Shown here in pieces: positions 57,259 to 60,324 of a DNA stretch of 64,000 nt. Source of the stretch: Rebecca billardiae RCC1528 (lineage: Eukaryota; Protista; Haptophyta); contig OZ251238.1 in NCBI GenBank assembly GCA_965240325.2, forward strand, positions 930,001-994,000. Direction: 5' to 3'. Under the pieces are notes generated by a model. It searched no databases and was not told the DNA's origin. It saw only the letters and a list, made by a program, of their open reading frames with translations. The position numbers and the translations under genes are program-made. Each line of letters begins with the position of its first letter. Position 1 is the first letter of the stretch.

Positions 57259-59178
57259 CTATTCGTCGGCCCCGGGATGATCGACCTGCCGGAGGGCGAG
57301 AAGCAGGCGCGCGGCCGCCAACCTCTTCGCCTCCTTCTTCGTGCGGGCCGTCGCGCGCCCCTCCTCCCGACGCAGCTGCGACTCGTACACGAGTCGCACC
57401 TCATGCGCTGCGCTCGCACCGGCCGCAGGCGCGCTCGTCTCGTGCAGGTCGACCTTGGTCCACCGGCAGAAGAGCATGAGCGTGGCGAGCGCGCCGGCGG
57501 AGCTATCGGCGGGGCCGATGGCGGCGAGCTTGCGAAGCGCGGTCTGCTCGCGGGCCACCGCCGCCTTGCGGCCGGCCGCCACCGCAGCCGGGTCCCTTGT
57601 CCCGGCCGGCAGTGCAGCACGCGCGCGCGCGACCTCGACGGCGTGCGCTGCTGCCTCGTGCTCCATGTCAGCGAGCAGCGCGACCGGCCGGTCCTGCCTC
57701 TCGGCGAGCACGACGAAGCTACTGCCCGCCTGCCGCGCGCGCCCGCGGCCCTGCACGAACGAGACGGCGTGCTGCATGGGGTCGAAGCGGATCACGCAGT
57801 TCGCGGCGGGCACGTCCACACCCTCCTCGGCGGCGGAGGTCGCGATGAGCAGGTTGGTGGCGCCGCTCGAGAAGTCTGCAAGGCGCTGCGCCGCCTGTGC
57901 GCGCGAGACGGAGAGCGACGGCGTGGCAGGCGACGAGCTGGCGTACAGGCACGCGCTGCGCACGCGGCCGGCGAGGTCTGCGTCGGCGGCGATGACGTGC
58001 GCGAGGATGTGCGTCATGACGCGCTGCTGCACGAAGACGATCCCTCGAAAGGCGCGTGCGTCCTCGCCAATCTTGTCGAGCAGCACCTCGACCAGGTTGT
58101 CGAAACGCGCGTGCGAGGGCGCGGACGCGGCCCAGAACGCCCGCCTCGCCGCGAGCGCGCTGTGCGGCCAGCGTGCGGCCGCGGCAGCCGCCTCGTCGTC
58201 GAGGCCGTACATGCGGAGGAACTCGGTGGCCGCGTCCTCTGCCGCCTCCCAGCTGGTGACGAGCAGCCGCAGGGCCTCGTACCAGTGCTCCAGCTCCGCG
58301 CAACGCCCGCTGCGGGAGCCTAGCCGGCTGGCATACGCGCCCCACTCACGCACTGCCAGCCGCCGCAGCGCGGACTCGAACTCGGGCAGCTCCTCCTTCG
58401 CGGCCGCCTCGAGCGAGCGGACGACTGCGACAAGGCGCAAGGCGAATGCGCTCGCCTCGCCGGTGCGCACGCGCTCAAAGAAGGTCGCCTCCATCAGGTG
58501 CTGCGGCGGGCGCGTGGCGGTGCCGGCGTCGGCAGGCGCGGACCTCATCACGATGTCCGGCGTGCGCACCTCCGCCACAAGCCGCGTCGCGTGGTACCCG
58601 CCGGCGACGAGCTCCTCGCTGCTGGCGTGCTCCACAGCGTCGATGAGCAGGTCATCGCAGAGCTGGCGCACGGCGGCCTGCACCTTGCCCGCGCTGACGG
58701 CGTAGGTGAGCGAGGCGGTGAGGCCGAGGACGCGGGGCCGCGAGTCCGCGCGCTGCAGGGTCCTGGCGAGCTTGCGGTACGGGTGCTCCTTGAGCACGTG
58801 GTGCACCTCGTCGAACACCACGAGCCCGAACGAGCCCCAGCTGAGGCGCTCGTGCCGCGCCTGCGCCGCCTCGAACGCCTTGGGCGTCGCGACGAGGATG
58901 TCAAAGGCGGGCGCGAGAGACACGCCGCCCATGAACTCGGCGACGTCCATGCCACTCCACTCGCGGATGGCGGCAGCCTGCTGCGAGACGAGTAGGCACG
59001 TGGGCACCAGGAAAAGCGAGGGCCGCTCGCACTGCGCCGCGCACGCGGCGGCGATCAGCGTCTTGCCGGCGCCGGTGGGCAGCAGGACAATGGTGTTCTT
59101 CTCGACGGCGGTCTTGACGATGCGTTGCTGGTACGGGCGCAGCGCGGCCTTGGGCGCGATCCGTGAGTGGAGCGGCAT
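57259..59178 (-). CDS. Dicer/RIG-I-like DExD/H helicase with C-terminal dsRBD/DUF283-like domain; no PAZ or RNase III
   Basis: LRPYQ, NTIVLLPTGAGKTLIA, LVVFDEVHHVLKEHPY, LGLTAS, RGIVFVQQR, NLLIATSAAEEGVDVPAANCVIRFD, SFVQGRGRAR; C-terminal GALATLMLFC...ARTKKEAKRLAAARLLLAL; intronless, 639 aa. Confidence 0.9.
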   Translation of the reverse strand: MPLHSRIAPKAALRPYQQRIVKTAVEKNTIVLLPTGAGKTLIAAACAAQCERPSLFLVPTCLLVSQQAAAIREWSGMDVAEFMGGVSLAPAFDILVATPKAFEAAQARHERLSWGSFGLVVFDEVHHVLKEHPYRKLARTLQRADSRPRVLGLTASLTYAVSAGKVQAAVRQLCDDLLIDAVEHASSEELVAGGYHATRLVAEVRTPDIVMRSAPADAGTATRPPQHLMEATFFERVRTGEASAFALRLVAVVRSLEAAAKEELPEFESALRRLAVREWGAYASRLGSRSGRCAELEHWYEALRLLVTSWEAAEDAATEFLRMYGLDDEAAAAAARWPHSALAARRAFWAASAPSHARFDNLVEVLLDKIGEDARAFRGIVFVQQRVMTHILAHVIAADADLAGRVRSACLYASSSPATPSLSVSRAQAAQRLADFSSGATNLLIATSAAEEGVDVPAANCVIRFDPMQHAVSFVQGRGRARQAGSSFVVLAERQDRPVALLADMEHEAAAHAVEVARARAALPAGTRDPAAVAAGRKAAVAREQTALRKLAAIGPADSSAGALATLMLFCRWTKVDLHETSAPAAGASAAHEVRLVYESQLRREEGRATARTKKEAKRLAAARLLLALRQVDHPGADE

Positions 59179-59379
59179 GGACGGTCAAGTGCGAGTCAGG
59201 GTCAAGAGTGGTCAACGTCTCGTGTGTGATCGACTTGAGACTGATCGTGACCCGGATTCCTCCGGCAGGGGCAGGTGGGGGCGAGTGGTGACCCACCGGG
59301 CGGTCGCTCCGCACTGGCGACCCCCCATTATTTTGATCTTCTGGCGGGAACTTGGAGAACAGGTCAACAGGACAGCCAG

Positions 59380-60324
59380 ATGGCGGCCGACCCGCTCACA
59401 CGTCTGCTCGAGGCAGCTGACAAGACGATCCTCAGCGTGGGCTCGGGCGACGGCTCGCAGCAGGCTGCCATCGTCGCTCGCGGGCACCGCAACGTGACCA
59501 CCACCTTCTTCGACTCTCGAGCAGCGCTGCTCGCCAAGTACCCACAGTCGGCACCGGCCAGCCTGCGCGTGCTCGAGGGCGCCGCGCGTCCGCCTCTCTT
59601 CGAGGTCGACGCGACCAATCTGCAGTCGTACGGGCTTGGCATGTTCGACATCTGCATCTTCTCCTTCCCGCACACGGGCGTGCCCAATAACGATCCCAAC
59701 AACGTCGCTTCGAACCGCGCGCTGCTCACCGGCTTTTTGCGCTCGGTGCAGCACGTGCTTAAGCCTGACGGACAGGTGCAGATCACACTCAAGACGGGCG
59801 AGCCGTACGATCGATGGGAGCTGCCCAGGCTCTTGAGTGACGAGTGCGACCTTCACTTGACCTCGACGCACCCGCTCGACAAGTCGCAGTTCACCGGCTA
59901 TGTGCACCGCCTCACCGTCGGCGCGACCGGCAAGATGACGCAGGTGCGCGACAAGGGCGCCAAGGTCTACTCCTTCGAGCGGCGCCAGCCCGCCAACGCC
60001 GAGCCGACTGTCGCGCAGCTGCCGCTCTCGACGTCCGCGTCCGTCGTCATCGTCGCGCTGCTGCACGCGGCCCTCAGCTATGCTGAAGTCGAGACAATGA
60101 TCGGCGAGGTCCTTCACGCGGCACGTGGCGAGGCTGAGAGTCTGAGCGTGCTCGACATTCGCAGGCGGGCGGCGGGCAGGTGCAAGATCGCCTGCGCCAC
60201 ACTGCCTGACACGCGTCAGATGAACCGGGTGCTGTACGCGATGGAGCACAAGGGCTGTGCATGCCGAGGGGGCTCCCGGGCGGGTCGCGGGATGAAGCCG
60301 GCCTGGATGGCACCCGCCGAGTGA
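59380..60324 (+). CDS. DUF2431/Bmt5-like SAM-dependent RNA methyltransferase fused to a C-terminal Z-alpha winged-helix domain
   Basis: ILSVGSGDGS, LLAKYP, FEVDATNL, FDICIFSFPHTG, NRALLTGFLRS, ITLKTGEPYDRW (DUF2431); C-terminal TRQMNRVLYAMEHKG...KPAW (compare ADAR1 Z-alpha KKEINRVLYSLAKKG...PPLW); intronless. Confidence 0.8.
   Translation: MAADPLTRLLEAADKTILSVGSGDGSQQAAIVARGHRNVTTTFFDSRAALLAKYPQSAPASLRVLEGAARPPLFEVDATNLQSYGLGMFDICIFSFPHTGVPNNDPNNVASNRALLTGFLRSVQHVLKPDGQVQITLKTGEPYDRWELPRLLSDECDLHLTSTHPLDKSQFTGYVHRLTVGATGKMTQVRDKGAKVYSFERRQPANAEPTVAQLPLSTSASVVIVALLHAALSYAEVETMIGEVLHAARGEAESLSVLDIRRRAAGRCKIACATLPDTRQMNRVLYAMEHKGCACRGGSRAGRGMKPAWMAPAE

Follow-up and report, generated by a model that had tools for sequence, protein, structure and literature searches.

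Near the downstream end of the window, i.e. the whole stretch of 64,000 nucleotides of contig OZ251238.1 from Rebecca billardiae RCC1528 that was analysed, lies a single-exon gene for a protein of 314 residues. The N-terminal part of this protein is a diverged paralogue of the Bmt5 RNA base methyltransferases, which depend on S-adenosylmethionine (SAM), and the C-terminal part is a winged helix of the Z-alpha type. The following features were identified in the gene (residue numbers refer to the protein):

59380..60324, + strand: complete coding sequence of the BMT5-like/Z-alpha-type fusion, single exon, 314 residues plus stop (open reading frame list and sequence)
59431..59910, + strand: BMT5-like class I SAM methyltransferase domain, residues 18-177 (Pfam PF10354)
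59440..59463, + strand: motif I, GSGDGSQQ, residues 21-28, family-specific SAM-binding loop (45-sequence alignment)
59659..59679, + strand: motif IV, FSFPHTG, residues 94-100, presumed catalytic loop (45-sequence alignment)
60055..60321, + strand: Z-alpha-type winged-helix domain, residues 226-314 (AlphaFold2 model, profile against PDB, Pfam, Foldseek)
60169..60186, + strand: six-residue insertion AAGRCK, residues 264-269, in the α2-α3 loop (a gap in 83-84 of 85 homologues)
60205..60237, + strand: start of recognition helix α3, PDTRQMNRVLY, residues 276-286, with R279, N282, R283 and Y286 (HMMER alignment to PKZ, ZBP1 and ADAR1)
60295..60306, + strand: β-wing motif K306-P307-A308-W309 (aligned to KRPVW of PKZ and PPLW of ADAR1)

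The open reading frame runs from its first ATG at 59380 to a stop codon at 60322-60324. In an alignment with 44 homologues of 300-350 residues the protein is collinear from D4 to its C-terminus, and therefore the start codon is correct and an intron need not be assumed. An identical protein is also called on a contig of an independent public assembly. The coding parts of the locus have a GC content of 60-76%, and the flanking spacers one of 54-63%. The genome searched comprises 72 Mb in 41 contigs and contains at least 50 nuclear light-harvesting-complex genes; the host is therefore a photosynthetic alga, in agreement with a sequence-only reading made earlier of this DNA. That reading had also placed a Z-alpha domain at 60091-60324, of which the end is exact, whereas the start falls two codons inside the string EVETMIG, which begins at 60085. 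The strings it quoted (SLSVLDIRRR, PDTRQMNRVLYAMEHKG and KPAW) are all found in the protein. The closest named relative of the protein is from Pavlovales sp. CCMP2436, with 53% identity; as micro-synteny, too, is shared with CCMP2436 only, the alga is probably a pavlovophyte haptophyte.

The identification of the catalytic part as a Bmt5-like methyltransferase is borne out by PF10354, whose 168 profile positions are matched from 1 to 167 with a score of 108.6 bits (cut-off 24.7; E 5.2e-31). In the alignment of 45 methyltransferase sequences, residues G21, G23, D24, S26 and Q27 of motif I and F94, F96, P97, H98 and G100 of motif IV are invariant, as is F43, while D45 and D77/A78 are each found in at least 90% of the sequences. 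An active class I methyltransferase would be expected to show such a pattern. The BMT5-type catalytic module is intact, and a variable linker joins it to the Z-alpha-type reader. Two motifs had been singled out as deviating from housekeeping Bmt5. For motif I the deviation is real and holds family-wide, since GSGDGSQQ stands in place of the GEGDFSF, GEGNFSF or GDGDFSW of canonical and fungal-type proteins (pattern G[ED]G[DN]FS[FW]). For motif IV, the difference between FSFPH and FNFPH is not diagnostic, as FMFPH occurs in the fungal-type protein P0092 and FTFPH is the consensus of the family.

Fold and contact residues of the C-terminal domain

An AlphaFold2 model of residues 226-314, built from a 38-sequence alignment, reached a predicted local distance difference test score (pLDDT) of 87.2 and a predicted template modelling score of 0.78. 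Its three helices span model residues 9-22, 32-42 and 53-66; a short strand precedes helix 2, and strands 70-72 and 83-85 form a beta hairpin. The resulting order α1-β1-α2-α3-β2-β3 is that of the compact winged helix-turn-helix of about 65-80 residues expected of Z-alpha, and corresponds to the layout of three helices plus a wing that had been read from the sequence. Model confidence falls to 76 in the block of the AAGRCK insertion. Prediction from the full-length protein as a single sequence gave a pLDDT of 34.

The relationship to Z-alpha is clearest from profile comparisons with the 177,635 distinct sequences of the PDB. With a domain profile of 64 sequences, the best 17 matches are all Z-alpha proteins, headed by fish PKZ (E 0.0065, nearly the whole domain aligned), and followed by ZBP1, ADAR1, DLM-1, an E3-ADAR1 chimera and ORF112; the ADAR1 alignment spans α3 through the wing. 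With a profile of 38 sequences, the 11 best matches are again all Z-alpha proteins. The Pfam z-alpha family is found below threshold in 28 of the 38 family members (best E 0.00098), and any other Pfam family in at most two. In the HMMER alignment to PDB entry 2acj, KEINRVLYSLAKKG...P-PLWKI stands opposite RqLNRvLYamekkg...KPtWkl.

Through these profile alignments N282, R283, Y286, P307 and W309 correspond to N173, R174, Y177, P193 and W195 of ADAR1. N282 and Y286 fall on the Asn and Tyr of the NRxLY, NQVLY and NRVLY segments of PKZ, ZBP1 and ADAR1, and R279 aligns with K170 of ADAR1 and, like R283, is near-invariant; the position of K169 is taken by Thr278. Sequence searches found 96 homologues, 85 of which carry the C-terminal domain and were used for residue counts. 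N282 and K306 are kept in all 85; R283, Y286, P307, P276, L258 and W309 in 84 (with Phe instead of W309 in the remaining one); R279 and R261 in 83; T278 and Q280 in 81. The stretch PDTRQLNRVLY and the KPxW motif are thus conserved in 80-85 of the 85 homologues, while helix 1 and the loops are variable. Conservation is thus concentrated where ADAR1, PKZ and ZBP1 touch Z-form nucleic acid, and with contact residues this close to invariant the likeness is more than chance. The retention of these residues, including the exact NRVLY match, had been noted from this one protein, and holds both in the alignment and across the family. The contact face of the Z-alpha-type reader is under strong purifying selection.

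A published scheme calls a Z-alpha domain from a winged helix with at least three of the ADAR1 residues N173, Y177, P192, P193 and W195, and holds that winged helices bind the Z-form only if N173, Y177, P192/P193 and W195 are present (PMC11298590). The present family holds four of the five.

Several observations weigh against this assignment. The Pfam z-alpha match (PF02295) stays below the gathering cut-off of 21 bits, with 14.5-14.7 bits for the protein described here, where it is confined to helix 3, and 19.5 bits for the best family member. A phmmer search of the PDB with the single domain gave zero matches, Z-alpha being reached by family profiles only. Foldseek against the PDB returned ADAR1 Z-beta and Z-alpha, PKZ and I73R as best matches (E about 1e-3), intermixed with Fur, H1 and RPC34 domains, and across the structure searches the fold alone does not separate Z-alpha from the winged helices of Fur, PadR, H5 or RPC34. 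Against viral structures, poxvirus E3-type proteins and a Solumvirus Z-binding protein are among the best Foldseek matches, beside generic helix-turn-helix proteins. A feature search of the ESM Atlas gave only generic helix-turn-helix clusters as language-model neighbours. As to the residues themselves, ADAR1 K169 is replaced by Thr and P192 by Lys in the family, although PKZ is likewise basic at position 192. Compared with PKZ and ADAR1, the wing loop has 3-5 additional residues, and wing length reportedly influences B-to-Z conversion (PMC2190711). Finally, the Rebecca billardiae copy is itself divergent, with its unique α2-α3 insertion and without the GPP that precedes the wing elsewhere in the family, albeit with all contact residues kept. 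The sequence-only reading had pointed to Pfam and structure comparison as its tests, and their outcome is accordingly divided: the winged-helix model agrees with it (pLDDT 87), whereas Pfam remains sub-threshold and the fold search ties with generic winged helices.

The foremost alternative is built on these same observations. The domain could be an unspecialised winged helix whose ligand is right-handed RNA or DNA, or else a protein partner, and its likeness to Z-alpha could stem from convergence or from very distant ancestry without Z specificity; the enzyme would then amount to a Bmt5 paralogue equipped with an additional domain for substrate docking. The tie in the structure searches, the sub-threshold Pfam match and the generic Atlas neighbours all fit such a domain, as does the fact that the best Foldseek match, ADAR1 Z-beta, does not bind Z-DNA. 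Z-beta, however, lacks the Tyr that the fusion family has kept. Moreover, all 17 of the best profile matches in the PDB are Z-alpha proteins, and the residues by which Z-binders differ from other winged helices, the Asn and Tyr of α3 and the Pro-x-Trp of the wing, are near-invariant in 85 homologues. We therefore regard this alternative as unlikely, though the most serious of those considered. Homology of the C-terminal domain to Z-alpha is, in our judgement, highly probable, and actual binding of the Z-form stands at about even odds or a little better.

Paralogues and distribution of the fusion

Five further BMT5-like loci were found in the genome. One of them, L001, is canonical: it scores best of the loci against Pfam, reads GDGDFS and FNFPH at the two motifs, and has a basic tract at its N-terminus. 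The fungal Bmt5-type protein P0092 scores 116 bits to L001 versus 75.5 bits to the fusion protein, and the latter is not the nearest to fungal Bmt5 among the paralogues of this genome, as a Bmt5 orthologue should be. The question whether a separate canonical Bmt5 exists, raised together with the original proposal, is thereby answered: it does, and the fusion gene is not the sole BMT5-like gene.

The remaining loci are more diverse. L002 (G000:C7:2534330-2537848) and L004 (G000:C3:3772880-3776383) are a near-identical pair of paralogues on different contigs, with Cys in place of the His of the catalytic loop (FNFPC in L002, SNFPC in L004); motif I of L004 lacks the GDG (LTVGDLTFS), and this copy may be a decaying duplicate. 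L003 (G000:C8:1739395-1742895; open reading frame 1360-2778, + strand) has a CEGQGG motif and a C-terminal extension of about 250 residues, in which Pfam names no domain. It is nearest to a separate subfamily, P0094-P0096 (111-112 bits), which is possibly an FDXACB1-like branch. L006 (G000:C32:161917-165726; open reading frame 478-2646, - strand) has a long insert within the methyltransferase domain and C-terminal JAZ-type C2H2 zinc fingers (PF12171, E 2e-5). Zinc fingers of the JAZ type bind double-stranded RNA, and the combination of a BMT5 module with a reader of duplex RNA therefore recurs in this genome.

In a maximum-likelihood tree of methyltransferase domains, the 26 sampled fused proteins and two short forms make up one clade, set off from all other paralogues and from the fungal-type proteins by a branch of length 1.28 with a support of 100/99. 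The single clade implies that the fusion arose once and, together with the canonical L001, confirms that the protein is a diverged paralogue and not the housekeeping Bmt5. Five short members (P0028, P0044, P0056, P0058 and P0064; 207-285 residues) have GSGDGSQQ but no C-terminal domain. P0028 and P0056, the two short forms sampled in the tree, nest within the fused clade, and such forms have either lost the domain secondarily or come from gene models cut short at an intron.

Rather than one gene in one alga, as the sequence-only reading framed it, the fusion represents a family of about 85 or more members in haptophytes, diatoms and pelagophytes, and hence across haptophytes and ochrophytes. 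Named carriers include Pavlovales sp. CCMP2436, Phaeocystis antarctica, Pelagophyceae sp. CCMP2097 and diatoms of the genera Thalassiosira, Mediolabrus and Amphora. Transcripts of homologues are present in MMETSP, indicating that they are expressed. In databases these proteins are named 'hypothetical protein' or '25S rRNA (uracil2634-N3)-methyltransferase', with PF10354 as the only domain listed.

Throughout the representatives, region searches, viral contigs and genome examined, the Z-alpha-type domain was seen on BMT5-like proteins only. An exhaustive phmmer search of 1.84 billion representatives with the domain gave ten matches, eight of which are BMT5-like proteins or fragments; the other two, the TPR protein P0099 and the repeat protein P0100, were discarded as compositional artefacts. 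Other architectures were absent from two region-restricted searches (protein lengths of 168-537 and 401-1276 residues), and no relatives were found in IMG/VR viral contigs. When the genome was searched with the domain as query, no second copy came up, the other matches (E 0.04-4) resembling noise. A six-frame search with PF02295 gave no match up to E 10, but missed the domain of the fusion protein as well and is hence uninformative. A 729-residue protein of Thalassiosira profunda (P0101) combines protein prenyltransferase alpha-subunit repeats with a truncated BMT5-like domain and a Z-alpha-type domain; it probably reflects two neighbouring genes fused by annotation and no real third architecture.

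Proposed role and rival explanations

Taken together, these results lead us to favour, with slightly more confidence than doubt, a two-domain enzyme in which a Z-alpha domain guides an RNA methyltransferase to structured RNA. We propose that the winged helix would dock the enzyme on duplex RNA that has the left-handed Z conformation or can be made to adopt it, and that docking on the Z-form would create an adjacent A-Z junction with unpaired bases. The methyltransferase would then modify a base exposed at the junction, by analogy with its family at uridine N3. Such a base would be a natural substrate because uridine N3 is reachable only in an unpaired base. In rRNA hairpins, binding of ADAR1 Z-alpha gives rise to A-Z junctions in which bases may be flipped out (PMC7862695), and the sole characterised BMT5-family member reportedly methylates uridine N3 of rRNA (PMC3950682). 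The likeliest substrates would be structured cellular RNAs, rRNA hairpins first, and the role would be a structure-guided housekeeping or regulatory modification rather than immune sensing. On the other side of the balance, the m3U chemistry is an extrapolation from yeast Bmt5, the only family member with a known substrate.

An immune-like role has been considered in view of the gene next door, which is transcribed divergently from the fusion gene:

57259..59178, - strand: Dicer/RIG-I-like-type helicase, 639 residues, divergent (Pfam ResIII, DEAD, Helicase_C)
59179..59379, no strand: head-to-head intergenic spacer of 201 bp, presumed bidirectional promoter region (coordinates from the open reading frames; promoter role inferred)

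The closest solved relatives of the helicase are an ancestral Dicer helicase (1.4e-36), DCL1, LGP2 and MDA5. Pfam finds no RNase III, PAZ or double-stranded RNA-binding domain (dsRBD) in it; its C-terminal tail contains a dsRBD-like string, KKEAKRLAA, that Pfam does not call. These observations on the helicase concern window positions 57259-59178 (- strand) and L014:4647-7371. The divergent helicase-methyltransferase pair is also present in Pavlovales sp. CCMP2436, with 43-65% identity over five helicase segments, which shows that the helicases are orthologous; a comparison of the 17-kb locus of CCMP2436 with window positions 45-64 kb gave this gene pair as the sole shared content. At the seven other loci examined (one from a pelagophyte, others including marine metagenome contigs) the pairing is absent from all. 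The pairing thus hints at a link in pavlovophytes alone and is no defining trait of the family; since it holds in two pavlovophyte genomes and at none of the seven other loci, the adjacency is taken here as context and not as functional evidence.

From this neighbourhood an ADAR1-analogous surveillance can be construed, in which Z-prone double-stranded RNA, self or viral, would be marked by methylation in concert with the helicase. Besides the head-to-head position of a Dicer/LGP2/MDA5-type helicase at 201 bp and the persistence of the pair in CCMP2436, it might draw on the basic N-terminal tract that L001 has and the fusion protein lacks, which weakly speaks against a nucleolar location. Surveillance would, however, sit poorly with the missing helicase at all seven other loci, with a fusion protein in which Pfam finds no dsRNA-binding domain, with conservation that is strong and uniform where immune genes typically show fast turnover, and with the lack of relatives in the viral contigs searched. 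We consider this explanation improbable. The same holds for its fullest form, in which Z-RNA-directed methylation in haptophytes and ochrophytes would, in pavlovophytes, share a promoter with the helicase in a two-gene module of dsRNA surveillance, an independent counterpart of ADAR1 and the RIG-I-like receptor proteins. A constitutive role of the enzyme on structured cellular RNA such as rRNA is no less likely than an immune-like one.

In DNA, pyrimidines methylated at N3 count as lesions, not marks, and Pfam finds no DNA methyltransferase motifs in the protein. It is thus very improbable that the domain reads Z-DNA behind RNA polymerase and that the enzyme methylates DNA bases, even though Z-alpha domains bind Z-DNA and Z-RNA alike (PMC11298590) and the coding parts of the window, with about 70-76% GC, may favour Z-prone tracts. 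The sole characterised BMT5-family member, moreover, reportedly acts on rRNA (PMC3950682).

Comparison with known systems

To our knowledge, accepted carriers of Z-alpha are few, i.e. ADAR1, ZBP1, PKZ and some viral antagonists, and nearly all are linked to animal innate immunity. In the family described here the Z-contact residues are kept in about 85 homologues from main marine phytoplankton lineages, on a class of enzyme newly linked to Z-alpha. If these domains do bind the Z-form, recognition of Z-RNA or Z-DNA would reach well past animals and the viruses that infect them, the sites of Z-prone RNA in a cell could be read from the activity of a natural enzyme, and base exposure at A-Z junctions would offer a simple route for methylation of the Watson-Crick face (m3U) in duplex RNA. 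Even without Z-binding, the proteins would constitute a well-defined, unannotated family of RNA-modification enzymes of ecologically dominant algae. We found no paper on Z-alpha joined to a methyltransferase, or on Z-alpha in haptophytes, diatoms or pelagophytes in such a form, and the fusion is absent from surveys of non-metazoan Z-alpha domains (PMC11298590, PMC11293857). The novelty lies in a known reader domain placed in a new enzymatic and taxonomic setting.

With the Z-alpha domains of PF02295 (ADAR1, ZBP1, fish PKZ, poxvirus E3, cyprinid herpesvirus 3 ORF112 and African swine fever virus I73R) the C-terminal domain shares the α1-β1-α2-α3-β2-β3 winged helix, the Asn and Tyr four residues apart on α3 (within an NRVLY identical to that of ADAR1), the Arg after the Asn, a basic residue three positions upstream, and the Pro-x-Trp of the wing. 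It differs in an invariant PDTRQ cap and a VLDIRR motif in α2 of its own. The partners of known Z-alpha domains are a deaminase, a kinase, RHIM or a dsRBD, whereas here the partner is a methyltransferase and the hosts are haptophytes and ochrophytes. With yeast Bmt5, the N3-methyltransferase of U2634 in 25S rRNA, and PF10354 (formerly DUF2431), the catalytic part shares the GxGD SAM loop, the DAT motif, the FxFPH loop and the acidic residue after strand 2. Unlike Bmt5, the fusion proteins form a clade of their own, have GSGDGSQQ instead of GEGDFSF, and add the C-terminal Z-alpha-type domain; the protein described here moreover lacks the basic N-terminal tract of the canonical L001.

Candidate Z-alpha domains of algae have been described in a p15/PC4 activator of phytoplankton and an acetate-CoA ligase of Symbiodiniaceae (Romero et al. 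2024, PMC11298590; Herbert 2024, PMC11293857). They were likewise predicted computationally, by the same criteria of a winged helix and at least three residues (PMC11298590). By their descriptions they are set apart from the present fusion by other partner domains and other lineages.

The closest functional parallel is ADAR1 p150. That protein has dsRBDs and Z-beta, which the fusion protein lacks; its reader is N-terminal and its chemistry deamination, against a C-terminal reader and, by prediction, methylation here; and the fusion protein is not known to be linked to interferon-like signalling. Pfam finds neither a dsrm nor an A_deamin domain in the fusion protein, but only the BMT5-like domain and a weak z-alpha match. 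Of the neofunctionalised, Z-targeted methyltransferase that the sequence-only reading put forward as an ADAR1 analogue, the architecture, the contact residues and the status as a diverged paralogue have stood, while Z-targeting and an ADAR1-like role are hypotheses. What the two proteins would have in common is the joining, in one polypeptide, of a Z-alpha-type reader and an enzyme that modifies RNA bases.

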